Assembly: GCA_965112735.1 (NCBI GenBank)
Contig: OZ218961.1
Coordinates: forward strand, 496,001-560,000
Direction: 5' to 3'
DNA from: Phaeosaccion multiseriatum
Lineage: Eukaryota > Protista > Ochrophyta, other classes
DNA: 64,000 bases
A model generated the notes under the pieces. The model did not search any database, was not told the DNA's origin, and worked only from the letters and a program-made list of their open reading frames with translations. Shown here piece after piece: positions 33,707 to 62,417 of the stretch (the first letter of the stretch is position 1; each line of letters begins with the position of its first letter). The position numbers and the translations under genes are program-made.

Positions 33707-34654
33707 TCAGTCCTGGCAGTTGCAGGGGTGTCCATTGGCGTGCACCCACTGCTTCATCTCCTCAAACCTTTCGGGTTCGATAACCCATTCCGCGCCCTGG
33801 CCACCATACTCTTCTTGATAAACACTGTCCCTGATGACCTGTGGGCACGACCTTTCGTCCCACTCGCACCGCACTTCCTCTGATCGGAGCCACTTCAGCA
33901 CAGCAAGGCTCTTACCCTGCACGACTGCATCCATGCAAACCTCCTCATTCCAGTCACAGAGGTGGCGAGCATTGGAGTGGAGGAACTGCAGTACCTCGAG
34001 GCGGCCACACCAAGCCGCATACGAAGGCCCATTGCGACAATTGCCGTCTTGATTCTCTTCCAGCAAGGCTCTCGAGGGAGGATGGTCGAGAAGCCATTCC
34101 ACGACGGGAACATGCCCACCTTCACATGCGCCGTGCCAGGATTCGGAGGAAAACTCTGCACGGGCCTCCTCCGACATGAGCCACTTGAGCATCTCCAAGT
34201 GTCCTGCCTTTGCAGCCCGGCCACACATATAGGAGCCGGTAGCGTACCATGGGCACTGCTCCTTGTCGGGAAGGTCCTCTGAGCGCAGCCACTTGAGTAC
34301 GCTCAGGCCATGCTCTCTGTTCTGCGCTGTTCCGTGACACACATTTCGATCCCAGGGACAGTCCTTGCCATGGAGGGCCTTGCATACCTCGACATCACCG
34401 TGCTCGGCAGCGGCCCTGAAGAGCTTGACACTCAGCTCGAGGCCCTGCCGACCTGTCGCCCAGTTCACGCACTCCAATGAGCTGACCACAGATGAGTAGG
34501 CTGTCTCCAATGCTGGATACAAAGTGGTGTAGTTTGTCTTCCACTCCTCACACACTTCAGCCACGAAGCAGAAGTGCCCCTTTCCAACGTGCTCCAAGAT
34601 AGCGCTGACCAGCTCGGGCTGTGCCAAGGCCTCGTGGCAAGCCTCAAATAGCAT
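33707..34654 (-). CDS. Intronless F-box-like/ankyrin-repeat protein ANK1 (315 aa, lacks the basic leader of its paralogs)
   Basis: ELVSAILEHVGKGHFCFVAEVCEEWK (F-box-like), repeated AA..GHLE.LKWL / CPW / CDW motifs typical of algal and giant-virus ankyrin proteins; ends GHPCNCQD*. Confidence 0.8.
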   Translation of the reverse strand: MLFEACHEALAQPELVSAILEHVGKGHFCFVAEVCEEWKTNYTTLYPALETAYSSVVSSLECVNWATGRQGLELSVKLFRAAAEHGDVEVCKALHGKDCPWDRNVCHGTAQNREHGLSVLKWLRSEDLPDKEQCPWYATGSYMCGRAAKAGHLEMLKWLMSEEARAEFSSESWHGACEGGHVPVVEWLLDHPPSRALLEENQDGNCRNGPSYAAWCGRLEVLQFLHSNARHLCDWNEEVCMDAVVQGKSLAVLKWLRSEEVRCEWDERSCPQVIRDSVYQEEYGGQGAEWVIEPERFEEMKQWVHANGHPCNCQD

Positions 34655-35620
34655 ACCGCCCCCTCCTTCATCTGAAGCAGTAGTAGCACTGGCACATCTG
34701 CCTGACTGTCTGTCAGCTCACGTTACTGTTACCTCCGGCTCCGAAGTTCTCCTTGAAGCCTCTTTGAGAGGAGGATGAGAGCTGCAGCACAGCACAGCAA
34801 GCACACCACAGCAGCTACTGCACTCTCCGTAGGCGTCACAGCGTCAAGTTGTCGCCTATGGTAGTCACGGTGAGGGTCAGAGCATAGCTGGATCGAAAGG
34901 AGGCTAACCCGGACGACGTCTGGACCAGCGACAACTGTGAAGGTGCTGAGCTTCGATCTCGGCTTCTGGTGGTACACACCCCTCGCTAACCGCTTCGTGT
35001 AGCAGTCCTTCCCGCAGAGGGATGTTCCCTTGTGCTTGGGGACTCCACGCTCGCAATGTGTGTGTTCACTAGAACGTAATCGCCACGTAATCGGTACGTA
35101 ATCGGATGTCAGATTGCGTGATGGTGGTTCTTTACTCCCTCTCTCCCGCCCTCTCTCTCACTCTCTCTCTGTCTTTGCCACCTCCTTGTTCTCTCCCTCT
35201 CCCTCCCTCTATCATTCCCTCTCTCCCTTCCTCTCACGCTCTCTCCGTTTCGTTTCTCCTCCCCTCGCCCTCCCGCACTCTCTCTCTCTCCTCCCTTCTC
35301 CCTCCCTCCGCCTCTCTCCACCTCTCTCTCTCCCGTCCCCCAAACACTATTCTCCCTGCGCTGCTCGTTTAGGTATGGCCCTTCTGTCTGCACTCCCTCA
35401 GAAACGTTCAAACGCGTGGAAAGAAAGAACACTGATATATATTACACTCTTAAGTGCCATCTATGTGGAAGAAAGAAAGAAGAGGAAGAGGAGGAAGAGG
35501 GGGGTTGGTGGTACACGAGCAAGGTGTGGGCATCTGTGACTCTTTGGTTTCATCGGTTTCTACCTCCTTCCTCCCCTCTCCACTGCCATCCTCCTCCTCC
35601 CCCCCCCATATGCCCCCAAC

Positions 35621-35827
35621 AGCGACTGGCACGTGCTGGTAGCGGACGATCTCTACCCCGACGTGGAGCTTGCTTGGGGCAGGGCCTTGAGCAGCGGGCT
35701 GGTGCGGGATACGCCCCCCCGGGAGGTGGAGGCCCTTATGCATGGGCACGATGTGCGCTTCGGAGGGGTCATGGACACCGCCCGGGTGGGGCTGGGTGTA
35801 TATGTACCCCGGGGGGTCGGGGTTTGA
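35621..35827 (+). other. Orphan terminal-exon-like coding fragment (DWHVLVADDLYPDVELAWGRALSSG...GVGV*)
   Basis: Preceded by a pyrimidine tract and CAG acceptor; protein-like composition; upstream exons not identified. Confidence 0.3.
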
Positions 35828-36433
35828 GTGTCAGCTTCCTTGAATAGACCTGTCTCAGTTTCATGTTTCACCCCATCCTGCTGCCGCTGTTTTGAGTTTC
35901 AGCTTCAGTTTCAGCTTCAGTTCTATGGAGCATACGTGGAGCTCTTCTTCAAGAGTGCTGCACCTGTAACGGCCCAAGCACAAGCAAGCAGCAGGCCGGT
36001 CTGGTACCTTTTTTTCTTCTTGTATGCTTATTTCTTAATATTACTCAATCACAACCCGTCTGCCAGAGGGAAGCGGACGGCGGGCAGTGAGGAACACCAA
36101 GGGGTCTGTGTCCACGGCAGCCCCTGACTCACTCAGTATGAAGCCACGCCGAGGCCACCCCACCGTGCTCGTCAATCGCTTCCAAAGCCTCCTACACACA
36201 CTTTCAGTTTCTTAGGTGATTCCTATCAAAAAAGCCTCCGGAAGGATATGCATGTCTTCAATCTCTTCCAAAGTTCCCTTCCCATGCGGCCGTGTGGCCG
36301 TGTGGACGTGTGGATGGGCATTTCCCGCATCTCAATCTCAATGCCATGAACGGAGGGGAGCAAGTCGAGGCTTCCATCTGCCCCCCCTGGGTGCATACCT
36401 CTCTCTCCCGATCTGTGCAAGCTTATTCTCTCC

Positions 36434-37507
36434 TCAGTCCTCGCAGTCGCAGGGGTGCCCATTGGCGTGCACCCACTTCTTGATGTCCTCAAAGGTTTTG
36501 GCGTCGATGTCCCATACCCCGCCCTCCCCTGCCCAATACACTCTGTCCCTGATGACTTGTGGGCACGACTGTTCGTCCCACGCACACTGCACGTCTTCCG
36601 ATCTGAGCCACTTGAGCACAGCAAGGTTCTTACCATACATGACTGCATACTTACAGACCCGAGCATCCCAATCACAAAGGTGGGGAGCATTGGCGTGGAG
36701 CAACTGCAGTACCTCGAGGCGGCCACGTAAAGCTGCATAACAAGCCCCATCGCGCCACTCGTCACAACCATTCCAGTCCAGCAAGGCTCTCGTGGGAGGA
36801 TGCTCGAGAAGCCATTCCACGACGGGAACATGTCCACCTTTACATGCGAGGTTCCAAGAGACGACATCAAAGTCTGCCCCACCGTCGTCCGACAGCAACC
36901 ACTTGAGCATATCTAAGCGCCCTTCAAGTGCAGCTCGGCAACACATACAGGAGCCGTCCCATGGGCACTGCTCCTTGTCGGGAAGGTCCTCTGAGCCCAG
37001 CCACTTGAGTACGCTCAGGCCATGCTCTCTGTTACGCACTGTTGCAGTACACACATACTCATCCCAGGGACAGTCCTTGCCGTGGAGGGCCTTGCATACC
37101 TCGACATCTCCGTGCTCGGCAGCGGCCTCGAAGAGCTCCTCAGTTAGCTCGAGGCCCTGCCGACTTGTCGCCCAGTTCAAGCACTCCACTGAGCTGACCA
37201 CAGACGAAAACGCTGTCTCCACTGCTGGATACAAAGCGGTGTAGCTGGCCTTCCACTCCTTGCTCACACCAGCCACGAAGCAGAGGTGCCCCTTTCCCAA
37301 GTGCGCCAAGATGGCACGAAGCAGCTCGAGATTTTCCAGGGCCTCGTGGCAAGCTTCAAAGAGCAGCCCATTCACTGAGGGCGTAGCACTGGCACCCCCA
37401 CATGCTGTTGTTGCCGGAGACCGTCTCAGCCTCCTTCCCTGTGCAGAGTCATGTGGCGCCTCCCCGTGCCCCAATGCCATTCTCCTCCGCTGCAGCCTCG
37501 TCTCCAT
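36434..37507 (-). CDS. Intronless F-box-like/ankyrin-repeat protein ANK2 (357 aa from METRLQRRR)
   Basis: Paralog; start chosen from the shared METRLQRRR leader; ends GHPCDCED*. Confidence 0.85.
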   Translation of the reverse strand: METRLQRRRMALGHGEAPHDSAQGRRLRRSPATTACGGASATPSVNGLLFEACHEALENLELLRAILAHLGKGHLCFVAGVSKEWKASYTALYPAVETAFSSVVSSVECLNWATSRQGLELTEELFEAAAEHGDVEVCKALHGKDCPWDEYVCTATVRNREHGLSVLKWLGSEDLPDKEQCPWDGSCMCCRAALEGRLDMLKWLLSDDGGADFDVVSWNLACKGGHVPVVEWLLEHPPTRALLDWNGCDEWRDGACYAALRGRLEVLQLLHANAPHLCDWDARVCKYAVMYGKNLAVLKWLRSEDVQCAWDEQSCPQVIRDRVYWAGEGGVWDIDAKTFEDIKKWVHANGHPCDCED

Positions 37508-37924
37508 TGTCTCGTCGATTTGGGTCTCGGGATAAATGCGAGTAAGTAAGCACCCTAGTAGGAGGAGAAGAAGGTGTTGAAGAAGGGGGGTGGAAGGAAA
37601 GGCGGAGCGGAGCAGCGAGACAGAGAGAGAGTGTGAGGGGCCGTGGAGGAGGGGCAGCAGCAGAGAGACCAGATGGCCAGCATGATTCACACATCTGTTG
37701 TAACTCCTCCCACTCCTCTTCCCCGCAGCTGCTTCCCCGCTTCCCCCGTCTTGCTCCCCCCTCAAGAACAAGGGGCGGGCTATCTCCGGTAGCAGGCACT
37801 TACCAGCGCCAGCAGAATCCTTTCTTTCTATCAGCCTCACCCCCTTCCTTATGCTTCCTACTTTATTCACGCGTGGGAGGTCTTGCGGCCCGTATGGAGC
37901 TCCGGATAGCCAGACCCACCATCT

Positions 37925-38550
37925 ATTTTCTCCCTAATTAAGTGCCATCTATGGTTGTCTAAAAGTAATGTCTCACCGCCCCGGGGAACTTAGCCCTCGA
38001 GGTCGTGTCCCTCTGACTCATCAGTTCTCCCCATCGGCACAAAGTTGATGCCAGCCAGGATCCTATGTCGAATCGACCTTTCGTGTCGGGCCCGCTGGAG
38101 CGCAACGGCCAAGCGCCGAATGACGCAAACAGCCCTCGCATAAGCCCTCATGTCCAGATGTTCGTGCCCCCCAGCCATGTGGGTGGCGAGTGTTTTAATA
38201 AACACCTGGGCAGACGGACCAAATGCGCCTTGTTGTTCCATACCGAAAGGGACGAGGTGGTACCTCGTGGGGTCATAGTGGATATCTCCACCCTGGCCTT
38301 CCGTGCCGGCTTGTGGCACCCCATACTTGGTGCGCTTGGTTGCTTCAGCCTTCTTGGCTGCCGCGAGTGCCTCCTTCGATGCCTTACCACGATTGGTGGT
38401 GTTAGTGGCATCAGTGAGCGTGATGTCGATCATCAGGGACTTGTGTGGCCGTCCCCATATTCGCTCGTGGTCGGATGGAAGCTCGAACATCCTGGGAGGG
38501 GTCACGATGTCCATCTCCATTTGCTTGGCCACGTGGGCGTCACCCCTCAC
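37925..38550 (-). mobile_element. 5'-truncated fragment of a CRE/R2-type non-LTR retrotransposon (C-terminal restriction-like endonuclease region)
   Basis: ORF 37990-38580 contains MDIV..SLMIDITLTD..AKKAEATKRTKY..HLVPFGMEQQGAFGPSA..FIKTLA..LAVALQR, the REL-domain pattern of CRE-clade elements; the segment is absent at the equivalent position upstream of ANK3 (~40860-40900). Confidence 0.75.
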
Positions 38551-38641
38551 GCAGCAAAGGCCCAACAAGATCAGTGCCATGCTGCAACCTCCTACACCTT
38601 CCCTCGACCAACCCCCATGGCCACCGTTGACAGCCCTTCAC

Positions 38642-38643
<2 letters not shown>

Positions 38644-38715
<72 letters not shown>
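38644..38715. repeat. (CA)n microsatellite
   Basis: Directly visible. Confidence 0.95.
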
Positions 38716-38717
<2 letters not shown>

Positions 38718-39368
38718 ACACACATTGTAGGTGTATGGGCAGGACATCGACATTAGGTATCGACAAGGTCTATTTTGGTCTAATTCGGGACTGTGGGCGG
38801 GAGGTTATCGGGTCAGTGACAAGGCCGTGCAGTAGGCAAAGGGGATAAGGCCAAAGGGCATACAGGACATTGGGTATGGAGCATACGTGGAGCTCTTCTT
38901 CGAGAGTATGGATGACTTTTCTGTGCTTATTTCTTATTATTGCTCAATCACAACCCTTCTGCCAGAGGGAAGCGGACGGCGGGCAGTGACGAACACCAAG
39001 GGGTCCACGGCAGCCCGTGACTCACTCAGTATGAAGCCCCTCACTCACTCACTCACTCACTGAATCACTCAGTATGAAGCCACGCCGAGGCCACCCCACC
39101 GTGCTCATCAATCGCTTCCAAAGCCTCCTCCTACACACACTTTCTGATACCTATCAAGTCAGTAAAAAGCCTCCGGAAGGATATGCATGTCTTCAATCTC
39201 TTCCAAAGTTCCCTTCCCATGCGGCCGTGTGGACGTGTGGACGTGTGGATGGGCATTTCCCGCATCTCAATCTCAATGCCATGAACGGAGGGGAGCAAGT
39301 CGAGGCTTCCGTCTGCCCCCCCTGGGTACATACCTCTCTCTCCCGATCTGTGCAAGCTTATTCTCTCC

Positions 39369-40448
39369 TCAGTCCTCGCAGTCACAGGGGTGCCCATTGG
39401 CGTGCACCCACTTCTTAATGTCCTCAAAGGTTTTGGCGTCGATATCCCATTCCTCCTCGTAATACTCTTCATACACTCCTCTGTCCCTAAGGATCTGTGG
39501 GCACGACTGTTCGTCCCACTCGCACTGCACTTCCTCCGATCTGAGCCACTTGAGCACAGTAAGGCTCTTACCCCTCAAGACTGCATACATACAGACCTCC
39601 TCATCCCAGTCACAGAGGTGGCGAGCATTGGCGTGGAGGAACCGCAGTACCTCGAGGCCGCCCCAGCCAGCTGCATAACAAGCCCCATAGCACCAAGAGC
39701 CGCTTTCATTCTCTTCCAGCAAGGCTCTCGTGGGAGGATGCTCGAGAAGCCATGCCACGACGGGGATGTGCCCGCCTATGCATGCACTGCTCCAAGAGCC
39801 GGAATCAAAGTCTACCCCACCGTCGTCCGACAGCAACCACTTGAGCATATCCAAGCGCCCTTCACGTGCAATAGCACACGTAGTGGAGCCGTCCTCGTAC
39901 AATGGGCACTGCTCCTTGTCGGGAAGGTCCTCTGAGCGCAGCCACTGCAGTACTCTCAGGCCATGCTTATTGTTAAACGCTGTTGCCTCACACACATTTT
40001 TATTCCAGGGACAGTCCTTGCCATGGAGGGCCTTGCATACCTCGACATCTCCGTGCCGGGCAGCGGCCCTGAAGAGCTTGACACTCAGCTCGAGGCCCTG
40101 CCGACTTGTCGCCCAGTTCACGCACTCCACTGAGTTGACCACAGACGAAAGCGCTGTCTCCACTGCTGGATACAAAGCGGTGTAGCTGGCCTTCCAATCC
40201 TTGCTCACACCAGCCACGAAGCAGAAGTGCCCCTTTCCCAAGCGCTCCAAGATGGCACGAAGCAGCTCGAGATTCTCCAGGGCCTCATGGCAAGCTTCAA
40301 AGAGCAGATCATTCACTAAGGGCGTAGCACTGGTACCCCCACATGCTGTAGTTGCTGGAGAGCGTCTCAGCCTCCTTCCCTGCGCAGAGTCATGTGGCGC
40401 CTCCCCGTGCCCCAATGCCGTTCTCCTCCGCTGCAGCCTCGTCTCCAT
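39369..40448 (-). CDS. Intronless F-box-like/ankyrin-repeat protein ANK3 (359 aa)
   Basis: Paralog with intact ORF METRLQRRR...GHPCDCED*. Confidence 0.85.
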   Translation of the reverse strand: METRLQRRRTALGHGEAPHDSAQGRRLRRSPATTACGGTSATPLVNDLLFEACHEALENLELLRAILERLGKGHFCFVAGVSKDWKASYTALYPAVETALSSVVNSVECVNWATSRQGLELSVKLFRAAARHGDVEVCKALHGKDCPWNKNVCEATAFNNKHGLRVLQWLRSEDLPDKEQCPLYEDGSTTCAIAREGRLDMLKWLLSDDGGVDFDSGSWSSACIGGHIPVVAWLLEHPPTRALLEENESGSWCYGACYAAGWGGLEVLRFLHANARHLCDWDEEVCMYAVLRGKSLTVLKWLRSEEVQCEWDEQSCPQILRDRGVYEEYYEEEWDIDAKTFEDIKKWVHANGHPCDCED

Positions 40449-41501
40449 TGTTTCGTCGAAACAGGAGACCTTGGGATAAATGCGAGGAAGTAAGCACCTC
40501 TAGTAAGCCCTGCTGGCCGGAGCAGGTAAGTTGCTGAAGAAGGGGGGAGTGGAAGGAAAGGTGGAGGGGAGAGGGAGAGAGAGAGAGAGAGAGAGAGAGT
40601 GAGCGGCTGTGGAGGAGGGGCAGCAGCCGAGAGACCAGATGGCCAGCATGATTCATACATCTGTTGTAACTCCTCTCACTCCTCTTCCCCACAGCTGCTT
40701 CCCCGCTTCCCCCGTCGTGCTCCCCCCTCAAGAACAGAGGGGCGGGCTATCTCCGGTAGCAGGCACTTACCAGCGCCAGCAGAATCCTTTCTTTCTATCA
40801 GCCTCGCCCCCTTCCTTATGCTTTTACGCAGCTGTAAGAGCTCCCGGGTTTGTCTGCCAGGCCCGCCATCTGTGAGTCTGGATGTCGAGGGCCTGAGGCA
40901 ACAAAGGCCCAACAAAACATCCTCCCTGATCAGTGCCATGCTACGCTCCAATCTCAACCCCCCCTGGCCACCGTTGACAGCCCTTCACTAGCCCCCCCCT
41001 GACACACAAAATTCTTAGGTTCGACCGCTGACGTGTTATTGCTATCGACCACATTCTCGATAGCAGATACAGTTGTAGCACGCCGGCTGGCGCCGGCCAT
41101 AGCAGATAGCAAGGAAGGTGCCGATTAGGTTGATTGATTCCTGTAAGTTACCAAAATAATAAAATGCCCTCCACTTACTTCCCTCAATCTCAGTCTGACA
41201 CGTCTCGCTGCTGAAGTCCTCGTCGAACCATATATACGTATTCACTGAAGCCTCCCACCAGCCGAAGGGCGCAAAGTGTCCCGCGAACATGCCACAGACA
41301 CGATGATGAGGGCACCTCCCTCTGCTGATAGACCGCTTGTAACAAACATTCACAGCAGCGCCTCGAAGCGCGACAGCCACAGCCGTCCATCCTGCTCTGT
41401 ACTGACCCACGCTCACCGGAAGCCTCCCCAAACGTACGCTAACTGCCCCCCCACCCCTCCCGCCATGTCTCTCTCTCCATCTGTGCGAGCTTGTTCCCCT
41501 C

Positions 41502-42599
41502 TCAGTCCTGGCAGTCGCAGGGGTGCCCATTGGCGTGCACCCACTGCTTGATATCCTGAAAAGTTTTGGCGTCGATGTCCCATTCCTCCTCGTAATACTC
41601 TTCATACACTCCTCTGTCCCTGATGACCTGTGGGCACGACTCTTCGTCCCACTCGCACTGCACTTCTTCCGATCTGAGCCACTGGAGCATGGCAAGGTTC
41701 TCACCAGCCAAGACTGCATTCATACAGATCTCCGTATCCCATTTACAGAGGTGGCGAGCATTGGCGTGGAGCAACTGCAGTACCTCGAGATGGCCCCAGC
41801 GAGCTGCACACCAAGCCCCGTCGCGCCACTTGCCGTCTTCATTTTCTTCCAGCAAGGCTCTCGTGGGAGGATGCTCGAGAAGCCATTCCACGACGGGAAT
41901 ATGCCCACCGTCACATGCGTCGTTCCAAGAGGCGGCATCAAAGTCTACACCACCGTCGTCCGACAGCAACCACTTGAGCATATCTAAGCGCCCTTCACTT
42001 GCAGCGAAGGCACACATATAGGAGCCGTTACGGTCCCATGGGCACTGCTCCTTGTCGGGAAGGTCCTCTGAGCGGAGCCACTTGAGAACGCTCAGGCCAT
42101 GCTTGCTGTTCTTCGCGGCTGCCTGACACACATACTCATTCCAGGGACAGTCCTTGCCATGGAGGGCCTTGCATACCTCGACATCTCCGTACCGGGCAGC
42201 GGCCTCGAAGAGCCTGACACTTAGCTCGAGGCCCTGCTGACTTGTCGCCCAGTTCACACACTCCACTGAGCTGACCACAGACGAAAACGCTGTCTCCACT
42301 GCTGGATACAACGCGGTGTAGCTGGCCTTCCACTCCTTGCTCACACCAGCCACGAAGCAGAGGTGGCCCTTTCCCAAGTGGGCCAAGATGGCACGAAGCA
42401 GCTCGAGATTCTCCAGGGCCTCGTGGCAAGCTTCAAAGAGCAGCCCATTGTATCCGGAACTTGAAGCAGTGGTAACACTGGCACCCCCACATGCTGTTGT
42501 TGCTGGAGACCGTCTCAGCCTCCTTCCCTGCGCAGAGTCATGCGGCGTCTCCCCGTGCCCCAATGCCGTTCTCCTCCTCCGCTGCAGCCTCGTCTCCAT
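41502..42599 (-). CDS. Intronless F-box-like/ankyrin-repeat protein ANK4 (365 aa)
   Basis: Paralog with intact ORF METRLQRRRR...GHPCDCQD*. Confidence 0.85.
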   Translation of the reverse strand: METRLQRRRRTALGHGETPHDSAQGRRLRRSPATTACGGASVTTASSSGYNGLLFEACHEALENLELLRAILAHLGKGHLCFVAGVSKEWKASYTALYPAVETAFSSVVSSVECVNWATSQQGLELSVRLFEAAARYGDVEVCKALHGKDCPWNEYVCQAAAKNSKHGLSVLKWLRSEDLPDKEQCPWDRNGSYMCAFAASEGRLDMLKWLLSDDGGVDFDAASWNDACDGGHIPVVEWLLEHPPTRALLEENEDGKWRDGAWCAARWGHLEVLQLLHANARHLCKWDTEICMNAVLAGENLAMLQWLRSEEVQCEWDEESCPQVIRDRGVYEEYYEEEWDIDAKTFQDIKQWVHANGHPCDCQD

Positions 42600-43085
42600 T
42601 GTTTCGTCGAAATGGGCCTTGGGATAAAGGCGAGTAAGTAAGCACCCTAGTAGGCCCTGCTGGCCGGAGCAGATAAGTTGCTGAAGAGGGGGGGAGTGGA
42701 AGGAAAGGCGGAGCGGAGAGGAGAGAGAGAGTGAGCTGTGGAGGAAGGGCATCATCCACACATCTGTTGTAACTCCTCCCACTCCTCTTCCCCGCAGCTG
42801 CTTCCCCGCTTCCCCCGTCTTGCTCCCCCCTCAAGAACAGAGGGGCGGGCTATCTCCGGTAGCAGGCACTTACCAGCACCCCCTTCCTTTCCGTCAGGGT
42901 GGAGCCAGACCCGCCATCTGTGAGTCTGGATGTATAAAATGCCCACTCAGCCAGCCAAGATTCGACGGCCTGTCCATTGAACTTGCGGCGCTTCCCTGCC
43001 CACTCATGTGCGTCATCCATCGTCCTCGCCAAGAAGGGAAGAGGAAGGAATAAGTCAAGCGGGGTTCTATGTACGAAGTAGCTAA

Positions 43086-43292
43086 TAAGACGCTTTCCCA
43101 CCCCTACCAAGTTCAACATCTTCTCTCTGTTATCACAACACTACAATTGTCGTAGGAAACCTCATGTACATTAGTGCGGCAGTGTTGATGCGGACTAACG
43201 TATATTAGATTTCCTACGACAATTGTCGTGTTGTGATGTCTCCCTCTACGGGATCCAATGTCGAACTTGCACGGGTGTGGGAAAGCGCCTTA
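43086..43292. ncRNA. Long imperfect fold-back hairpin (candidate miRNA precursor or decayed MITE)
   Basis: TAAGACGCTTTCCCACCCCTACCAAGTTCAACAT pairs with ATGTCGAACTTGCACGGGTGTGGGAAAGCGCCTTA; ATCACAACACTACAATTGTCGTAGGAAA pairs with TTTCCTACGACAATTGTCGTGTTGTGAT; short central loop near 43180-43188. Confidence 0.55.
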
Positions 43293-47238: not shown

Positions 47239-47378
47239 TCAGCTGGTATACTCGAGAGTCACTTTATAGGGGAACTGGCCGATTCTCGAGAGTCACTTTG
47301 TAGGGGAACTGGCAGACTGATCAGCTGATACTCGAGAGTCACTTTATAGGGGAACTGGCAGACTGATCAGCTGATACG
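47203..47378 (+). repeat. Four tandem copies of the gene's last codons, three of them including the stop (GAGAGTCACTTTATAGGGGAACTGGCAGACTGATCAGCTG)
   Basis: Copies start ~47203, 47251, 47285, 47331. Confidence 0.9.
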
Positions 47379-47879: not shown

Positions 47880-50800
47880 CTACGTGGCTGCACGTCGCTC
47901 AGGACCCTCAGCGATGGCAGTGAGGGCCGAAACCAACTCCGCGTGTGTGTAATACTTCAAGTCCTTCTCCTTCTGTACTTCTGCTGCTGTATCACCAACA
48001 GCTGCAGCAGCGGCCCTTGTCCCCCACGCGAGGCCATCCATCAAGACCCTCAGCTCCTCGGTGGAGAGGCTGGGGATAGAACCCGCGGCGTATAGGTGAT
48101 TGAGCTCAGCCATTCTCTCCTTGTGCTCCTTCTTCCTCCTGCTCTGCAAGCCCCGACACCTCTTTCCGTCCTTGAAGGAGGCAATGAACGTGTCCAAAGG
48201 GGCCACTTCCCATGCACCGGTATACCGCACCGCTGTCCGCACATCTCCATCACAGATGATGGCAAAGGTCACACCCCCTCCTCCTCCTCCTCCTCCTCCT
48301 CCTCCTCCTCCTCTCTGCCTCTGCTGCTGCTGCTGCTGCTCGTCCCCGTGTGGGATCTTTTCGAGGCTTGCGGACAGAGTGTCAAAGGTACTTCTGCGCC
48401 ACCCCCCTCGCCGCCCGCTCACCTGTGAATGCATTACACCAAGGAGGAGGAGGAGGAGGAGGAGGAGAACGAGGATGAGAAGGAAGGGGAGACGAAGAGG
48501 AGGAGGAGGAGGAGGGGAAGGAGGAGGAGGAGGAGGAGGAGGAGGAGGAGGAGGAGGAGGAGGAGGAGGAGGAGGAGGAGGAGGGGGAGACGAAGAGGAG
48601 AAAGAAGAAGGAGGAGGAGGGAGGAGGAGGAGGAGGGTGGTGGTCGAAAAGCAAAAGAAAACGGGCAATCTACCCACCCCTCCTCACCTCCGCCATGGGC
48701 ATCTTGTCTTGAAATCGATAAGCCGCCGACGCCAGGATCGGCCGAAGCCGCTCCATCTCCGAGCTGTAGGCAAAGCTCGGTGGGAAGAACACCCCGCACA
48801 CACCCCACTTGGCTTTCTGTCGGTTACCACCACCACCACCACCACCACCACAGGGACCAGCCGGTGCGGATAGGTAAGTGTGCAAGTCGTCTCGATTGCT
48901 CACCACCGTCACGAGGTCCAGGGGAAGTTGCTGAGTGGTAAAGTCTCGGAGGGAAGATACATCACCTCTGCCGGTGAGAGAGCCAGAGAAGAGCGTTTGA
49001 GAATTGCCCACCACCTTCCGTGTGTCCGTGGTGCAATGTGCGGTGAGCAATGGGGGTTATTAGTGAGAGAGGTGAACGTTGATTGACACGTGGAAGGTAC
49101 GTGAGGACGGAGACGGACCGACCGAGGGTGGGGACGGAGAGCAGGGTGAGGGGGGGTGAGGACCAAGCGACTACTATTACTGCTAGGTGTTGTAACTGTT
49201 GAAGCAGTTCCGTCCTTCCACTGACGTGCATACAGAGGAGGGCGGATGGCAGCGTATGGCAGTGGAGCAGGGCAAGTAGGGAGCAGAGAATGGTATGTTT
49301 CCGAGCGGAGGTGGGGGGAAAGGAGGTAAGAGTGCCCGCTCCGCTCCTCTTGGGGCTGGGGGCCAAACCCATGACGTAATCTTACGTACCATGATGATGG
49401 ATGGGTAGTGCTTGACGCCCACGGCTGCGCACAGCTTACCCTCCTCCGCGCAGTTCACAGAGCCCACCACCACGCTCTCTCTGAACTCCTCCGCCACGGT
49501 CTCCATCGGTTTGACCCACGCTTTGCAATCCGGACACCCGGGTACCCAGAACTCGACCAACCACAGGTGCTTGCTCGGCTTGCCTCCTCCTCCCATCACT
49601 TGGGGGAACTCTTTGCGGGTCAAGTTTCTCCTCAACGCACCGCCAGGCTTCTCTACGAACAGTTCCTCCTCCCCGTCCTCCTGGTCCCCACTGCCATAGC
49701 CGCTGAATTGCCCCCAGGCGAAGTAGAAGCCTGCGGAGACAAAGTCCCTCCACCAATTGAAGAGGTACGCCACGTGTGCTCGGATCTCATCCCCCTTGCT
49801 AAAGCGGTGAATCTGGTCCGCCTTCTTCACCTTTCGGAGGCGAAGCAAGACAAAACAAAGGAGGGAAGGTAAAGTATTGAGACCCTTATGAGCGGGGTAA
49901 GACAAACGGTGATAAAAGGTGGAGGGGCGTTGCAATGGTGCTCAGCTCACAGGAGACAAGAGAAGGAGATCGATACATGCGGATCGATTAAACTGTCTAT
50001 TGAAGTGAAGCTGAAACGGACCTTTCTAAAGCCGTCGTCCATGAGCGTTTCATAGGCGTGCACCACATCGTGGAATTGGCTCTCCGCGGCGGCTCTGTCC
50101 AGCCTGTGAGTGGGTGTGGGTTCGTGTGCGTGCGTGCGTGGGTAGATGGGAGGAGGAAAGACAGATGAAGTCGCTTTAGGTTGGGCGGCGGGCACGACGG
50201 GAGTCTGAAAGCAGCACAGATGATGATATACAGGCATAGACCATCGTTAGGAAAGAGGAGAGGTAGGGTGGGGTTGAAGTGGACCTTCTGTGGGTGCGGT
50301 GGGGATGAATTGGGGCGTCTGTGGAGGGAAGGGCACCCGCCCAACTCTCTGCGCTCTTCGTCTGTCGTACTATAAATAGCTCTTGGGTGGTGGATTCAGT
50401 CAAGTGTTGTCGCTTCCACCTTTTAATCTTACCTTTCGGGCTTTCTGTCCTGTTTGTCTGGATGAAGCTCCAGAGCCCTGGCATGGAAGGCCTGGGGAGG
50501 CAGGGGAGGGGGAGGTAGGTACAAGGGAGTGTGTGTGAGTGATGTGCGCGTCAGAGAATGGGAGGAAGAGGAGGGACAGACAGACGTGGAGGGAGAGAGG
50601 GAGAGGGGTAGAAGAGGAAGAGAGGGAGCCAGTAGAAAGAGAGAGGGAGAGAGACAGAAGAGGGAGAGAGACAGAAGTGGGAGAGGGACAGAAGAGAAAG
50701 AGAAGATAGAAGGCGGGGAAGAGAAAGAGAGAGCGAGAGGGAGAAGAGAGAGAGGTGGGTCGCACTTTTTCCGCCCCACTCCGATGCAGCGCGGGATGGG

Positions 50801-51382: not shown

Positions 51383-54300
51383 ATGGAGGCAAGCGTGGAG
51401 GCAAGCGTGGAGGCGTGGGTAGCGTCCTTCCCCGGCTTTGAGGGCGCGACCCTCCGAGGCTTGGCCGACGATGCTGAAGGGAAGGGCATGCTCGAGCTCA
51501 TGGGGCACTTGGTACCGTCCTCCAGGCCATCCGACGAAGAGGATGAAGAAGGAGAAGAGTACCAACAGAAGATGCAGGACGAGGAGCAGGGTGGAGGAGG
51601 CTGGGGCTGGACGAGAGTGAATGCTCTGCTTATGAGTGTGGGTGCTCCGACCATCAAGACGAGCGGGGAGACGGAGACTGGCATTACGACCGTTGCAGTG
51701 TGCAGCTGTCTCGAAGCACTACTGGGCTATGCCGTAAGCGAGGCATGTGAGACGAGGGCAGAGCTCATTGGACGGATCATGGAACTGGAGGAGAAGGCGC
51801 AGGACCACATCCGCCAGATCATCGAGGAGCAGATGAGAAGAGGCAGCTCTGCTACCACCGGTAGCGGTCAGGAGGCAGGGAGTGATGACGCAGACCCCGC
51901 AGCAGACGACGCCGAGCAGGAGATAAATGACGAGAACCTGCCGGCGGCAGCCCCCTTGCCACCAAACTATTCCACCCCCGCAAAGCCAACCCCCAAGCGA
52001 AAGAGGCGTCGCAGCAACGCCGAGTTTTTCACCCCTCTCAAAGACAAAGGCGTGCTCCAAGGTGAGTACGGGGTAGAAAGAAAGATAGAGAGAGAGTAGT
52101 GGAGGAAGAGAGGGGGTGCGCTTCTCACTGCCCCGCTGCAACCTCTGCCACCAGCCCTCGCTGTCTCCCTCTCTCTCTCTCGCCTTACGGAGAGCCTGCG
52201 TCCCTTTCCCCCTCTTTGCTTGTCAACTTTGCTGACGCCAAGTCGCGCCTTTCTCCTCCTCCTCCTCCTCCTCCTCCTCCTCCTCCTCCTCCTCCTCCTC
52301 CTCCTCCTCCTCCTCCTCCTCCTCCTCCTCCTCCTCCTCCTCCTCCTCCTCCTCCTCCTCCTCCTCCTCCTCCTCCTCCTCCTCCTCCTCCTCCTCCTCC
52401 TCCTCCCCCTCCCCCTCCTCCTCCCCCTCCTCCTCCCTCCCACCCCCTTTGCACATCATGCCTGCGTGCCCCTCACAACAGGGGGCAATGCTCTGCAATC
52501 CCCCCTCAGTCGGACTGCCAACGTCAGCACCAACGACGTCGCCAGTAGCAGTGGCCAATCCTCAGAGGCCCATACCCTGTCCCAAGCAAGATACACCGCC
52601 CTGGAGACCAAGTACCTGGTGTCACAGGACCGTTTCGCCCGCCTCGAGGCCGATCTGCAGCAGACCAAGAGCGACCACGAGCAGGTTAGGCACGAAGTGT
52701 GAAGTGAAGGGAACGGATAGGAGGTGCACACGTGCCCTCTCTATCCCTCCCTCTCCCTCTTTCTCGATCTCTTTGTCTCGCTCTGTCTCTCGGTCTCTCT
52801 GTTACATCTCTCTCCTTCTGTCTCTCTCTCTCTGCTCTGTCGCTCTGCCCCTCTCTCCTGTGTTTGTGTGTGTTCCTCTCGCTCCTTCCTTCTCTCTCTG
52901 ACACTATGTCCCTCTTCTCTATCCATACCCGACACACACACACACACAGACGCTCTTGCGAATGGAAGTGGAGCGCATCGAAGCCGAGGGCGCTCTGAGA
53001 GCCACGTACGAAAAGCAAGCCGAGGAAGTAAGCAGCCGTGGGCCTCCAGCGCTAATCCCAGCCCTTAACTTCGACAGAAGCCACCGCAGACGCATTGACT
53101 TTCACCCCTCAACCCTCTCTCCTCCCTATCCACTGCCATCCCTGTACTTGTTTATGAAGACGCGACAGAAGCTGCTGCAGGCGCACAGCCGGCTGGAGCA
53201 GCTTGCCCCCCTGGAGGAGGAGGTGGAGGGACTCCGCGACGAGGTGGACGTGTTGGGACACAAACAGAAGCACGTGCTCAAGACAGAGGAGGCGTTGCAG
53301 AGGGTAAGTGCGGTCGGGCTGGACTTGACGGGTTGGTTGGTTGGTTGGTTGGTTGGTGGGTAGGTGGGTGAGGGTGGGATGTGGGAGGGACGGGGGAGAG
53401 GCGGTGGTTATGGCGATGTGTGATGGGGTTGGTTGGGAGGATGTGTAAGAGATGTTCGTTGTATTGTAGTGTGTTTTGTTTAGTTGGTGGGTTGGTTGGG
53501 GGATCAAGGGCTGGATGGGTGAGGGGCAGTGGTTGTGGTGTGCTTGGGTTGCATATATATAACATGTGTTGTTATATATGCTTGTGTTGTTTGGGAAAGG
53601 GGGGGGAGGGGTGGTGGCTGTACAGAGACAAGGGCGCTGTAGAGAGAAGGTGCGGTTCCCTCCCCCCCTCAATCGGTTCGTTTGGAGTACTTACCTTATA
53701 CCATCGTGTTCGTCTTCCAATGTAGGCCCGAGCCCGTCTAGAGGAGCTGTCGGATCTACAGACTCAGTTCAAGAGCCAGGAGGAGGCCCACGCCTCTCTG
53801 CTGGACAGGAACTTTGAGCTTGAGAAGGAGGTGGCCACCATACCCACCCTCAAGAAGCAGCTGGAGGGCTACAAGCGCACCAAGGTAGGGCAGGGAGGGG
53901 GGGGGGAGGCAGGTCGGTGGGTTGGTAAACAGGTAGATGGGTAGGTGCGGCAAGAGTAGCACACTCACCCATATGCCTCCACCCACCGTGTACCTCTCTG
54001 TACGCCTCCACTAGACGGACCTGGAGGTGCAGATGCGCGACGTTCGAGCCGAACTGCTCCAGGCACGCTCCAAGGCCGAGACTCTCGGAGCGGAAACCAG
54101 AGAGCTTTCTCGAGGGGGAGAGGCCGCCCGAGGGGAATGTCTTCGTCTGCAGGCAGGTGGAGGTGTCGGCGTGGGTCAGAGGGAGGTTATGGATCGATTG
54201 AGAGAGAGAGCGAAAGATTTCAGCTGACCTTCCAATTGTCACTCCCTCGTTCGTCCCCGTCTCAACTTGCCCCGCCCCCCCTCTCCATCCACTGCCATCG

Positions 54301-57300: not shown

Positions 57301-58774
57301 AGAGTACCAACACGCAGAGGAGGGGGAGGGGCCGAGTACGGGGACATGGTGCGCGAATACGAAGCGCAAATTGAGAGCGCGCAGACTGAGAAGCAGGTGA
57401 GGGAGTGAGGTGGAGGGGGAGGGGATGGGTCGGAGTTTGGATGTGATTGTCCCTCTTCTTGTTGTGAGTAGGCATACCTCCTGGTGAGGAGGAGAGTAGG
57501 TCAGAGGGGAGAGAGAGAGAGAGCGCGTGTGTGTGTGTGCGTTCACTCTCCATCATGAACAAACAAACGAACAACACCCACCCCCAAAATACAAACGAAA
57601 CCATCTCTCTCTCTCTCTCCCTGTCTCCCTGTCTCTCTCTCACACAGGACTTCCTGATGAAATACACGGCAGAGGCGTGTGAGAAGAACAAGTTGCAACA
57701 GCGGCTCTCCGAGCTCCTTCAGGAGAACAGAGAGGCCAACCAACGAGTGCAGTCCTTCCAGCTCCAGCTGCTGCGCTACCAGCGACAGGAGGAGGACGGC
57801 AGTGGCTCCCACGGCAGCACCAGCGGCAACTACAGCAGCACTGCAAACTACATTGAGGCGACCACCCAGACCGATCTAGGAGCTCCAGGTCCGAGCAGCA
57901 AGAACAAGAAGGCTGCTGCTGCTGCTGCTACGGCAAAGAGAGCGTGTTCGTCTTCATGCTTGGCGACAGACTTGTGCACTGCCTGGCCTTGTGGATCACC
58001 AACATGCCCTGGGAATAAGGAGAACAACGGCGGCAACAACCAAGAGAACGCCAGCAAGAACGCTGCTGCCCTTGCTGCCTCTCCGGGTGTCGGGGCAGGG
58101 CGTAAGAGCAAGGGGCCGAGCTCAGCGCTGAGAACCATGAGGTACGAGCGAGGGAGATGTATATTATATATATATATATATATATATGGAGGGGGGGAGA
58201 GAGAGAATGGGAGGGAGAGACAACAGAGAGGGACGGAGACACAAAGAGAGAGAGAGCCAAGAAGCTAGCGTTCTTCGAGGAGGGTCGTGAAAAGCATGTA
58301 CGAGGGGTTTGTTTAGTGGCGTTTTCCTTTGTTGGAGCGTGGGTGTGGACAGGCATGTGGTGAAGAGGTGCATGCACGGGACGGAGAGCTGCGGCCACTC
58401 CCTTGCTTCCTCCAATGCCTCCTCGTGCTTCCTTCCTCTCTTACTCTCCATCTCCTCCCTTCCTCTGTGGCGCCCTCTCTACCCTCCTCCCCACTCTCCC
58501 TTCCCACTCCTCCCCCATACATCTGGCCCTCATCCTCCTCCTTCTTCTCGCCCCCCTTCTCGTCCTCCTCCTAAGGCGCCAACAACGAGAATCAAACGAG
58601 AACTACTCCTCAGAGGGGGAGGAAGACGCCCCCGCCAAGCAGTCGAGAAGATTGGGCATCGCAGGTGACCCCAAGAGCAAGAAGCAGCCTGCCCACCTAT
58701 CTGCGCCTGCCCCCCCTGGGCGAGAGAGCAGTGCCGTGACTGATGGAGACGCCCCGGAGTGTAATCAGATGTAA
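51383..58774 (+). CDS. HOOK-family coiled-coil protein, multi-exon
   Basis: N-terminal HOOK/CH-like segment (LLGYAVSEACETRAELIGRIMELEEKAQDHIRQIIE), LRDEVDVL, ELEKEVATIPTLKKQLEGYK, EMNPAVAEQLGRLKHDN; long coiled coil; ends PECNQM*. Confidence 0.75.
52254..52440. repeat. Intronic (CCT)n tract
   Basis: Directly visible. Confidence 0.95.
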
Positions 58775-59529
58775 AGCTGGTTTGTGTCAGTTTCAGTGTC
58801 AGTTCCTGTGTGTGTATTTGTGTATTTAGGAAGAAGTTTTAAAGAAGAAACATTGGACGGAGCGTGAGCTACAATAGCCCTGTGCTTTTGTGTTTTGTGT
58901 AAGAGAGTCATTGGCGTCAGGTGATGGGTAAGCCTTTCGCGGGAGAGAGAGAGAGGGAGAGACAGCGACGCACAGCCGTGCTACTGTCGACTGCAGACTA
59001 CCGTAAAGCGAACTCCTGCATGTGGGGGTGTGCTTCTTGTTTCATCGCCTGTGGGCGTGAGAGCAGTCATCAGTGGTCGGTGGTCTGTCGCGCAGTCCCT
59101 CTATAAAAAAAAAAAGCTGTTTACGCCCAAACTCTCCCCTTTTTTGAGTATCTGTCATCTAGACACTCACCCTCTTTGGGGCTTGGTATGTGGATGAGTG
59201 TGCGCTTTGGGTGTAGGGTGCCCCACGGCATCATAGCCTTACTAGCAATCCCAAAGATGCTCGAAGGTTGGCTGTGCGGGGGTGGGTGTGTCGTGGCATG
59301 GGCCCTCGGGACGAAGCTGTGTTTCCCGCCAAGATCGGCCCGAAAACAAGGACGATTTTTGATATGGAGGGGCCTCTGTGTGTGTTGTTAGGGAAGGTAC
59401 ACACTAACTTCTCATATCTACCGATCCTCCCGCACTTCTCTTGCAAGCCGACACAAACACTGACCCTCACAAACCAACCAGCAGTAGCAGCCAGCCCAAC
59501 CACAGCTCAAAACAAACAAAGCTCTTATC

Positions 59530-60496
59530 ATGTTCTCTTCATCCACCATCAAGACCACCATGATCGCCGCTCTCCTCGGCGCAGCTACCACTGGCGCGGC
59601 CGCCAAGGAGTGCGAGGGAACCTACAGAGTCTCCGTAGACAACCTCACCTTCCGCCAGCCCTTCAGCCCCGTCGTGGCGGTGGCGCACAACAAGGGATTC
59701 AAGGTCTTCGAGCCCATGGTGCCGGCGTCTGGACCTCTCCAGTCTGTCGCCGAGGACGGCGATGCCAGTGCCCTGGTGGAGCTCCTGGGATCCAACGACC
59801 TCGTGTGCGGCTACACGGTCGGGGAGGGGCCTCTCTTCCCTGGAGAGACGTGGGAGGGCATGCTTACGGTGTCCGAGGACTGCGATTGCGACACGCTGTC
59901 CTTCTCCACTGTGACCATGCTCATCAACACCAACGACGCCTTCATGGGAGTCAGCGCCATGCCCTTGGGCTATGAGGGGCTCTCCACCATGGCGCCTGCC
60001 TGGGACTCTGGAACGGAGGCGAACACTGAGATGGTGAGTGCGTCGTGAGGTGGGCAAGCAACTGGTACGCGTGTGTGGGGGCTCTCTTCTTCCGTCGTCT
60101 TATGTGCTGATGTTGCATGTGCTTTAGCGTATGAGGCAGAGGTCACGAGGCAGGGTGGCGGCCAACAGCAGCGCTCTCTCGTCTATCTTGTCAAGAAGCC
60201 CTTGTTACTGCGCTGACAAACATCCCCCCCCGCCCTTTTCGTCCTGTCATCCCTGCCCTTCTGCACCTCCTCCCCCCCTCCACCCTCCCCCCCCTCCCAC
60301 TCTCACGCGTTGGATACGCCAGTGCTCGGACATGCCCGGCCCTGCCTGCCCCTCCGATTCGGGCAACGTGTCCGGAGGGACTGGAGAGGGCTTTGTCCAC
60401 ATCTCCCGAGGCTTCCACGGAGTGGGATCCCTTGTGGAGCAGCGTTACGACTGGAGGAACCCCGTGTCCAGCATCAACGTGGAGCTGTACAAATAA
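59530..60496 (+). CDS. Secreted spondin-N domain protein, copy 1 (exons 59530-60033, 60323-60496)
   Basis: Signal peptide; NLTFRQPFSPVVAVAH, LQSVAEDGD, TMLINTNDAF, AWDSGTEANTE, GFVHISRG, YDWRNPV are spondin_N signatures. Confidence 0.85.
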
Positions 60497-61316
60497 AGTG
60501 TTGATTTTGTGTAAATAACCATCCGAGGACAGAGTGCAGCAGCAAGACACATACGTAGCGAGGGCGGCGGTAGGCATAGCCTGTTGGGTAAGGCCGGGCG
60601 GGGCAAGGGGAGGATACTTAAATTGATAAGGAGAGCCTTGGCAACCTTATTCAATTTATATGTAATTACACACAAAGCCATCATCTTCTGTGTACATTCG
60701 CTTCTTCAGTGCCTGCTGCAGCCTCGTCGATGCCTTGCGGCGCACACACGCACACACACACACACACACTTCTTAGGTTTCGATAGGTTGATTTCCTCAG
60801 TCAGATGGCATAGCTCGCTCGCCAACCGTCCATCGCAGATTGCTTCCCCCATGCCTCCTTCTCTACGCACATCACCTCTCTTCTGAGCTGCGTGGCGAGC
60901 TCCTACTTCCCTTCTCTCTGCCTCCCAAACGAAAGGAAGGGTTGGTGGTACGACATAGTTGTTGCCAAGAAGGGTTGCTTACGAAAGCACTACGTAAGAT
61001 TATGTCTTTGCAACTTTCCTCTCTTCTTGTAAGTAAGTGTGTGTCCCGGATCAAGACGGAACAAGTAAGACCACTCCAAAGAACATTGGCGCCTCTCTTT
61101 GGGGGGGGGGCATCTGGGAAAATTCCTCCTTGTGTTAGCTATCACTCCTTTCCTCCATGCCCCCTCATTGCCCCCCCCCCCCCCCCCTGCTTCGCTCCCG
61201 CCCTGCTGCTGCTGCCCCCGCTCAGAAGATCACCGGCTCGCAGGCAGTCGATTCGTGCGTGTCAGCAAGAGCGGATAGGCATCCCTTGCTTTCCAAGGCT
61301 GAACTTGGGCAACGCT

Positions 61317-62417
61317 ATGGAGACGAGGCTGCAGCGGCGCAGGGCTTTGGGGCAGCACGGGGAGGCAGCGCGTGACTGTGGGCAGGGGAGGAGGTGGATG
61401 AGACAGTCTTCAGCAGCATCATCAGCGGGAGGAGGTGGTGCCAGTGCTACTGTTTCATGCGTAGGAGGGAGTGGGCTGCTCTTTGAAGCTTGCCACGAAG
61501 CTTTGGCACAGCTCGAAGTGCTCCGTATCATCTTAGAGTACGTGGAAGAAGGGCGCTTCTGCTTCGTGGGAGGTGTGAGCACGCAGTGGAGGGCCAGCTA
61601 CACCGCTTTGTATCCAGGAGCGGAGACATCATTTTCATCCGTGGTCAGCTCTGAGGAGTGCTTGAACTGGGCGACAAGTCAGCAAGGCCTCGAGCTGAGT
61701 GTCAAGCTCTTCAAGGCCGGTGCCCTGTACGGAGATGTCGAAGTATGCAAGGCCCTCCATGGCAAGGACTGTCCCTGGGTTGAAGCTGTGTATCACGAAA
61801 CAGCGTTCAATAGAAAGCATGGCCTGGGAGTACTGAAGTGGCTGCGCTCGGAGGACGTTCCCAGCAAGGAGCCGTACCCATGGAGCAGGAACGGCACCGA
61901 CATGCTAAGCTTGGCTGCGAAGGAAGGGCACCTGGAGATGCTCAAGTGGCTCATATTGGAGGGTCATGCATCATTTTATGAGCAGTGTTGGAACGACGCA
62001 TGTTGGGGTGGGCATATTCCCGTCGTGGAATGGCTTCTGGACCATCCTCCCACGAGAGCCGTGCTGGAAGATAATGATTATGAAGAGTGGCGCCATGGGG
62101 CTTGGTTTGCAGCTGCAAAGGGCCGCCTCGAGTTGCTGCAGTTCCTCCACGCCAATGCTCGCCACCTCTGTGATTGGGATGCGGTGGTCTGTATATATGC
62201 AGTCATGTATGGTAAGAACCTTGCCGTGCTGAAATGGCTCCGTTCGGAGGAAGTGCAGTGTGAGTGGGACCAAGGCTCGTGCCCACAGGTCATCAGGGAC
62301 ACGGGGTACGAATGCTTTTGCGGGGAGGATGAGGAGTGGGACATCGACGCCAAACCCTTTGAGGAGATAAAGCAGTGGGTGCACGCCAATGGGCACCCCT
62401 GCGACTGCCAGGACTGA
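61317..62417 (+). CDS. Intronless F-box-like/ankyrin-repeat protein ANK5 (366 aa), dispersed and inverted relative to the main array
   Basis: METRLQRRR...GHPCDCQD*; 3' flank resembles that of ANK4. Confidence 0.85.
   Translation: METRLQRRRALGQHGEAARDCGQGRRWMRQSSAASSAGGGGASATVSCVGGSGLLFEACHEALAQLEVLRIILEYVEEGRFCFVGGVSTQWRASYTALYPGAETSFSSVVSSEECLNWATSQQGLELSVKLFKAGALYGDVEVCKALHGKDCPWVEAVYHETAFNRKHGLGVLKWLRSEDVPSKEPYPWSRNGTDMLSLAAKEGHLEMLKWLILEGHASFYEQCWNDACWGGHIPVVEWLLDHPPTRAVLEDNDYEEWRHGAWFAAAKGRLELLQFLHANARHLCDWDAVVCIYAVMYGKNLAVLKWLRSEEVQCEWDQGSCPQVIRDTGYECFCGEDEEWDIDAKPFEEIKQWVHANGHPCDCQD

Follow-up and report, generated by a model that had tools for sequence, protein, structure and literature searches.

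Site-specific diversification of ankyrin-repeat paralogs with a divergent F-box-like domain in the alga Phaeosaccion multiseriatum

If the copies of a gene share a scaffold and differ from one another in short patches that recur at regular intervals, the patches might reflect a loss of constraint, the exchange of sequence among copies, or selection for change at a surface that binds something. This is the question raised by five paralogs in a 64,000-nucleotide stretch of the genome of the ochrophyte Phaeosaccion multiseriatum (assembly GCA_965112735.1, contig OZ218961.1, positions 496,001 to 560,000 of the forward strand; hereafter the window, with coordinates counted from its first letter). 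The genes encode proteins with an F-box-like domain near the N-terminus (the head) followed by a stack of ankyrin repeats, and an earlier note on this DNA had proposed that they are diversifying substrate receptors that route variable targets to ubiquitination. We find that positive selection is confined to the ankyrin part of these proteins and that the head is conserved.

Positive selection in the ankyrin repeats

The copies were located from a listing of open reading frames (ORFs) and by a tblastn search of the window with one copy, and all five intact ORFs named in the earlier note are present: c1 (33707-34654, minus strand; 315 amino acids, starting at the F-box-like region), c2 (36434-37507, minus strand; 357 amino acids from a METRLQ start), c3 (39369-40448, minus strand; 359 amino acids), c4 (41502-42599, minus strand; 365 amino acids, used as the reference for models and residue numbering) and c5 (61317-62417, plus strand; 366 amino acids). 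The last is the most divergent of the intact copies and lies 19 kb from the others on the opposite strand. The description of these genes as intronless is based solely on their uninterrupted ORFs.

Each protein starts with the F-box-like domain, continues with six repeats of ankyrin type (a cap and then R1 to R5) and closes with a conserved Cys/His tail. On the minus strand of c4 these parts correspond, respectively, to 42303-42416 (residues 62-99, with three short helices), 41640-42239 (residues 121-320) and 41505-41639 (residues 321-365). In Pfam scans of c1, c3, c4 and c5, Ank_4 (1e-13 to 8e-13; 7.9e-13 for c1) and Ank_2 (2e-11 to 6e-8) exceeded their gathering scores, as did Ank_5, Ank and Ank_3, and nothing else was significant. 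An AlphaFold2 model of c4 has a predicted local distance difference test (pLDDT) score of 80-96 across the cap and five helix pairs, with residues 1-60 disordered, and its Foldseek matches are ankyrin structures (Espin-AR, FEM1C and designed ankyrin repeat proteins, or DARPins). The ankyrin identity proposed earlier is borne out by both the Pfam and the structural matches. The repeats are nonetheless non-canonical, in that helix 1 is long, none carries the TPLH motif, and in R1, R3 and R5 just three residues separate the CPW-type loop from helix 1, the beta-hairpins being short or absent.

Variation among the copies follows this architecture closely. We defined helix-1 segments as helix 1 of R1-R5 together with the three preceding residues, using the secondary structure of the AlphaFold model; they comprise 68 of the 315 aligned columns. 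Of the 18 columns with at least four different residues, 16 fall inside these segments (Fisher p 5e-10); the remaining 247 columns contain two, of which one directly follows helix 1 of R4. Variability is autocorrelated along the alignment, with peaks at lags 3-4, the spacing along a single helix face, and at 33-34, which is the length of a repeat; at lags 28-38, the observed autocorrelation was matched by 0 of 5000 permutations. The scaffold motifs and patch sequences quoted in the earlier note are all found in the alignment, and the patches are periodic as it had stated. Its phrase for the scaffold, near-identical, is somewhat overstated, since mean pairwise identity is 78% outside the helix-1 segments, compared with 50% within them.

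Averaged over whole genes, the NG86 method gives synonymous divergence (dS) of 0.17-0.39 and a ratio of nonsynonymous to synonymous divergence (dN/dS, or omega) of 0.53-0.75. We fitted site models to the 315 codons shared by the five intact copies with a self-written codon-likelihood program (GY94/F3x4). Models that admit positive selection were preferred in each comparison, with likelihood-ratio test statistics (LRTs) of 84.5 for M2a over M1a, 89 for M8 over M7, the comparison that the earlier note had suggested, and 84 for M8 over M8a. Some 5% of sites belong to the positive class, whose omega is large and poorly bounded (~35). LRTs ranged from 0 to 4.7 in 12 data sets simulated under the fitted M1a, so that the program performs as it should when there is no positive selection.

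The alignment was also split in three, with gap-adjacent columns removed and the best of all 15 topologies used for each part. The LRT was 1.6 (not significant) for the head and cap, 29.3 for R1-R3 and 20.5 for R4 through the tail. The best topologies differed between these segments, which indicates some recombination or gene conversion between copies. With gamma-distributed site rates in both models, the LRT was 32 (p 1e-7) and the same sites were recovered. When the proteins were partitioned by structure, omega was 2.24 in the helix-1 segments (greater than 1 at p 6e-4), as against 0.75 in the linker and cap, 0.54 in the rest of the ankyrin domain, 0.48 in the F-box-like core and 0.27 in the tail. 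The diversifying selection suspected at the variable positions is therefore supported and lies, in every repeat, within helix 1 and directly ahead of it, and the uniform ratios near 1 that would mark neutral decay are not what these partitions display.

All 15 sites with a posterior above 0.5 for omega>1 fall outside the head. The 11 with a posterior above 0.9 (c4 residues 159, 163, 190, 198, 201, 227, 230, 255, 257, 267 and 298) lie in helix 1 or the preceding turn; helix 2, the loops between repeats, the head and the tail have none. We placed the repeats in the DARPin register by HMMER alignment to a DARPin for R2-R4 and by anchoring on the conserved glycine that follows helix 1 in R1 and R5. 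In this register, selection falls on position 13, the residue that closes helix 1, in every one of the five repeats, and on positions 2 and 3 in R2 and R4. The other selected sites, at positions 1, 9 and 10, share a helix face with position 13 and are one or two turns away from it. For positions 13 and 14 taken together, a set of ten codons specified a priori, dN/dS is 2.1-5.3 in 10 of 10 pairs. At position 13 alone, the proportion of nonsynonymous differences (pN) is 0.62-0.94, even among c2, c3 and c4 (dS 0.17), and this position is essentially randomised in all five repeats. Because the DARPin register, the helical periodicity and the known geometry of ankyrin stacks all bear on where this face would point, we infer that it lines the concave ligand-binding groove.

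The F-box-like head and its proposed partner

Relatives of these proteins were sought in a collection of 1.84 billion representative sequences that does not include the window's own proteins. HMMER retrieved 8436 of them, nearly all through the ankyrin part, and among these only P0028, from the ochrophyte Chrysoparadoxa australica, spans head, repeats and tail (40% identity). Its gene occupies a range of 954 nucleotides for a 292-residue product, which implies an intron. A scan of metagenomes for family members returned one weak fragment (35%).

Several comparisons connect the head with F-box domains. When the N-terminal 77 residues were scanned alone, the top Pfam family was F-box in c2, c3 and c4 (E 0.028-0.2, 12-15 bits; the lowest value, which is still sub-threshold, being that of c2). 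With a hidden Markov model of the five heads, this N-terminal motif was also found in about 20 retrieved relatives, and 12 of 25 aligned homologous N-termini match PF00646, the best at 6e-7. When a profile of the head alignment was searched against all PDB sequences, each of the 21 matches was to an F-box protein at its F-box (FBXO22 at E 6.6e-4); after removal of three F-box-annotated relatives from the profile, six of six matches were F-box proteins, the best at E 0.08. Modelled separately with AlphaFold (pLDDT 76), the head shows helices at 13-23, 28-32 and 36-45, the three-helix arrangement of an F-box. In a VIA comparison of this model with 48,161 chains, F-box domains took 10 of the top 11 places (FBH1, COI1, Skp2, FBXO42, FBXL17, Legionella AnkB, FBXL2, Fbw7 and FBXL5), and Skp2 superposes on it with a root-mean-square deviation of 1.8 A over 40 of 41 residues. 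From these profile matches and the predicted model, our conclusion is that, in descent and in fold alike, the head is F-box-like but divergent.

If the head also acts as an F-box, the proteins would be interchangeable substrate receptors of SCF (Skp1-Cul1-F-box) ubiquitin ligases. We regard this as the best mechanistic reading of the locus and give it a probability of roughly 0.55.

A number of observations weigh against it, most of them concerning the head. Pfam scores remain below the gathering thresholds (14.8 vs 20.5 bits for F-box and 12.5 vs 24.3 for F-box-like), and the Pfam scan of N-terminal segments found no F-box match of any kind in the heads of c1 and c5. A conserved Leu-Pro dipeptide (LP) at the start of F-box helix 1 contacts Skp1, and this dipeptide is absent from its usual place in all five copies: c2-c4 have E-N there, c5 has A-Q, and the proline of c1 is one position off. 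Because the LP contact has been lost, the binding of Skp1 by this head is in question. The VIA Z-scores are just 2.7-3.5, which is attributable to the small size of the domain (~40 residues), and Foldseek returned nothing significant for the 77-residue head model. The omega of 0.48 for the F-box-like core amounts to moderate constraint only. As to the selection tests, five sequences yield imprecise estimates of omega (about 35), and recombination or gene conversion, which is present here, can inflate site-model tests. Regarding expression, four sequencing runs that hold the locus cover genes and intergenic DNA alike in contigs of about 100 nucleotides, so that they behave as genomic DNA, and a run search restricted to RNA-Seq listed none. 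The F-box assignment made in the earlier note is thus upheld by fold and by profile matches to F-box proteins, and falls short in its Pfam score and in the missing LP.

The chief competing explanation accepts the diversifying ankyrin binders and dispenses with the ligase: the head would no longer recruit Skp1, and nothing would be ubiquitinated. The proteins would instead be stoichiometric binders, inhibitors, scaffolds or sensors, or would engage some other partner through the head and the Cys/His tail. This is possible, with the odds leaning against it. It draws on the loss of LP and the sub-threshold Pfam scores, and also on the fact that about half of the aligned homologs from outside the window, including the closest, P0028, lack the proline as well. 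Moreover, the conservation of the tail (omega 0.27) indicates a second functional module. The tail ends in WVHANGHPCxC, invariant across copies, has a further invariant Cys in S-C-P-Q, and is shared by P0028; it could be a metal-binding or partner-binding module. (No F-box or PRANC match was found in the tail by the Pfam scan, the F-box-like domain being N-terminal instead.) What this explanation does not account for is that the head retains the F-box helix pattern and its core hydrophobic residues, superposes on the F-boxes of Skp2 and AnkB, and is under purifying rather than relaxed selection, and that nine distant relatives in the head alignment keep LP, IP or MP in register where P0028 and the window copies do not. 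An additional feature of the N-terminus is a disordered, Arg-rich extension of 50 residues with RRR and RRLRR clusters, present in c2-c5 (e.g., 42450-42599, minus strand) and missing from c1, which may be a nuclear localisation signal.

Origin of the patches and history of the locus

A separate matter is how the patches themselves arose. Instead of being driven by selection on point mutations, they could be mosaics of short gene conversions drawn from a much larger and older family, or products of a locally targeted mutational process, set in a scaffold homogenised by concerted evolution. Such an origin would fit the variation in best topology among gene segments, the mosaic profiles of pairwise identity, the differences at 2-3 nucleotides between hypervariable codons in nearly all pairs, and a depth of read contigs that suggests many related fragments elsewhere in the genome. 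Unfortunately for this hypothesis, synonymous divergence at invariant codons is the same within helix-1 segments as elsewhere (0.133 vs 0.141), which rules out the patches as older tracts of DNA. Furthermore, the variable codons stand singly, 3-4 apart, between invariant codons, a pattern that conversion tracts alone cannot yield, and the selection tests stay significant with segment-specific trees and site-rate variation. Even if conversion had supplied the diversity at hypervariable codons, its retention would still need selection, and we consider this origin improbable.

The layout of the copies is that of a clustered birth-and-death family, with three tandem units, two dispersed copies and one pseudogene. 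The tandem array (36025-42880, minus strand) comprises the duplicated units of c2, c3 and c4, whose homology reaches about 300-370 nucleotides upstream of the start codons in all three. Downstream, only c2 and c3 share a flank (~400 nucleotides, 92% identical), the 3' flank of c4 being unrelated beyond about 35 nucleotides. The shared flanks of c2-c4 are 89-94% identical, compared with 88% for the coding sequences; because the genes have diverged more than the noncoding DNA duplicated along with them, this neutral yardstick agrees with the selection tests. A sixth copy (~15086-15998, minus strand; ~68% nucleotide identity) contains several stop codons and frame changes and is open only in its last 122 codons (ORF 15101-15469). 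This decayed copy shows the birth-and-death turnover of the family.

Next to the pseudogene is an FNIP-repeat gene (12840-14297, minus strand; Pfam FNIP 3.6e-50), in which no F-box match was detected at E<=0.01. In amoebae and giant viruses, FNIP-repeat proteins often bear F-boxes. On both sides of c5 there are copies of a gene for a Spondin_N-like secreted protein (59236-60067 and 63161-63999, plus strand) that are 92.8% identical, indicating a local segmental duplication. Between c2 and c3 is a high-copy repeat (37894-38490) whose summed contig depth is 10-50x that of its surroundings in the four sequencing runs. The repeat overlaps a 196-residue ORF (37990-38580, minus strand) that has no Pfam match, and it is probably a mobile-element fragment. 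Elsewhere, 48100-48941 and 51967-52702 are intergenic low-complexity DNA made up of purine/pyrimidine trinucleotides in long tracts, whose translation is poly-Arg, poly-Gly, poly-Pro, poly-Leu or poly-Glu depending on frame.

Could the genes have come from a virus or mobile element, such as an integrated giant virus that uses F-box/ankyrin proteins to manipulate its host? They consist of single exons where the other genes of this genome contain short C/T-rich introns, the array contains the high-copy repeat, and there are Nucleocytoviricota ankyrin clusters among their ESM Atlas neighbours. However, a scan of a viral contig collection found no relative of the family, and the guanine-plus-cytosine (GC) content of the genes resembles that of their surroundings (0.52-0.61 in 2-kb windows). 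Ordinary host genes are interspersed with them, encoding a 3-beta-HSD/cytochrome b5 protein, a Spondin_N protein and an AAA ATPase, and the closest homolog with the full architecture is a nuclear gene of Chrysoparadoxa with an implied intron. A viral origin is, in our view, very improbable. The window as a whole is eukaryotic, with genes split by short C/T-rich introns. Those that interrupt the AAA-ATPase gene (29353-30929, plus strand) translate as SLSLS/PPSL stretches, and similar short C/T-rich introns have been reported for C. australica (10.1101/2024.02.19.579948). A contig of that species (GC 52.6%) had no nucleotide match to the window. One housekeeping ORF of the window shares just ~42% identity with proteins of Ectocarpus and Phaeothamnion.

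Neutral decay of redundant duplicates, in which surface residues would simply be free to vary, might be suspected from the high whole-gene dN/dS (0.53-0.75) and from the one copy that is already a pseudogene, but we reject it, given the omega of 2.24 in helix-1 segments (p 6e-4), the LRT of 84 for M8 over M8a, the saturation of position 13 (pN 0.62-0.94) even at a dS of 0.17, and the fact that the five ORFs are intact and carry in-frame indels only, when the flanks carry many indels.

Proposed function and comparison with known systems

The structure of the family, the identities of its domains by sequence and fold, and positive selection at located sites are the observations on which a mechanism can be built. 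In the one that we favour, tandem and dispersed duplication generates new copies of a modular binding protein within a birth-and-death family, each with a short, basic and disordered N-terminus, a divergent F-box-like domain, a cap and five non-canonical ankyrin repeats, and a Cys/His-rich tail. Purifying selection maintains the F-box-like domain and the tail and, within the ankyrin stack, the outer helices and the loops between repeats. Strong diversifying selection changes residues on one face of helix 1 and in the preceding turn of every repeat, such that each paralog would offer a different ligand-binding groove. The F-box-like domain would dock on Skp1/Cul1 and the variable groove would select a protein for ubiquitination, the targets being rapidly changing partners, e.g., proteins of viruses, parasites or selfish elements. 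Docking on Skp1, ubiquitination and the nature of the targets are what we infer beyond the observations, and an immune or antiviral role is what we hypothesize.

If the proteins are SCF receptors, a stramenopile alga would have arrived independently at a repertoire of ubiquitin-ligase receptors that diversify on an ankyrin scaffold. The connection of adaptive E3 adaptors with immunity would then reach past animals and plants, and a lineage whose immunity is almost unknown would gain a candidate layer of intracellular defence. A bolder version, which we find doubtful, is that the array is one arm of a genome-wide, germline-encoded repertoire for intracellular recognition, in which hypervariable ankyrin grooves coupled to cullin adaptors would bring about the ubiquitination of fast-evolving virus, parasite or selfish-element proteins. 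Such a repertoire would do with ankyrin repeats what F-box and MATH-BTB systems have been proposed to do in nematodes and plants.

The idea itself is not new, and by calling the system undescribed the earlier note overstated the case, there being precedents both for adaptive F-box families (PMC8120010) and for hypervariable ankyrin repeats in fungal receptors (PMC4986451), along with candidate receptors with other repeats in brown algae (PMC3341825). Our literature searches found no host repertoire of F-box-ankyrin paralogs with codon-precise hypervariability, in algae or elsewhere.

The closest parallels in organisation are the F-box families of nematodes and plants. The expanded families of Caenorhabditis elegans show adaptive evolution in their substrate-binding parts (PMC8120010). 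Like the family in the window, the nematode and plant families are multi-copy, clustered and subject to birth and death, combine a conserved head, which docks on Skp1 or may do so, with positive selection in the proven or presumed domain of substrate recognition, and are proposed to follow fast-changing targets. They differ in that their variable module is FTH/FBA, kelch or a leucine-rich repeat (LRR) rather than an ankyrin stack. The window family, moreover, belongs to an ochrophyte alga, has a divergent head without LP, and is known from a comparison of paralogs rather than from population data.

Hypervariable ankyrin, tetratricopeptide (TPR) and WD40 repeats occur in fungal NOD-like receptor (NLR) and STAND proteins, and in the ankyrin repeats of the NLRs positive selection acts on inner helices and hairpins (PMC4986451, Dyrka et al. 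2014). In contrast to these, the window proteins have a constant number of repeats and no NACHT or NB-ARC domain, neither of which was found by Pfam at E up to 1 in c1, c3, c4 and c5 (proteins of 315-366 residues). Diversity in the window is found between paralogs at fixed positions, whereas the fungal genes shuffle near-identical repeats within a gene. In brown algae, which are also stramenopiles, candidate immune receptors of the LRR-ROCO and NB-ARC-TPR types diversify fast by exon shuffling (PMC3341825). These share with the window family repeat-based ligand-binding domains that diversify rapidly, and they have been proposed to recognise pathogens. Their repeat type and signalling domain are different, and they change by shuffling repeat-bearing exons rather than by codon-level replacement in single-exon paralogs.

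The combination of an ankyrin substrate module with a small cullin-adaptor box is likewise familiar, from Legionella AnkB (F-box and ankyrin repeats; 5k35), from animal ASB and FEM1 proteins, and from the poxviral ANK/PRANC proteins, in which an ankyrin stack is joined to a cullin adaptor (PMC4353913). The AnkB F-box is also among the top structural matches of the window head model. AnkB and the PRANC proteins are pathogen effectors and not host genes, and the PRANC box is C-terminal whereas that of the window proteins is N-terminal; the box is a SOCS box in ASB proteins and a VHL-box in FEM1, and the cullin is Cul5 or Cul2. To our knowledge, none of AnkB, ANK/PRANC, ASB and FEM1 forms an array of paralogs with site-specific hypervariability.

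In the design of its variation, the family most resembles a DARPin library, which also varies defined positions on a fixed scaffold. Seven of the 11 sites with a posterior above 0.9 are positions randomised in DARPins (position 13 in five repeats, and positions 2 and 3 in one repeat each), an overlap whose probability by chance is about 1e-3 (a binomial estimate, with 6 of 33 positions randomised). The natural version departs from the engineered one in its non-canonical repeats (without TPLH, with a long helix 1, and with short or absent hairpins in three of them), in additional variable positions 6, 9 and 10 on the same helix face, and in the dissimilarity of the repeats that make up a single protein. 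Whatever the function of these proteins, they are a clean natural case of codon-precise diversification of an ankyrin surface, at position 13 in every repeat and with an omega well above 1, and inform us which ankyrin positions nature uses to change specificity.

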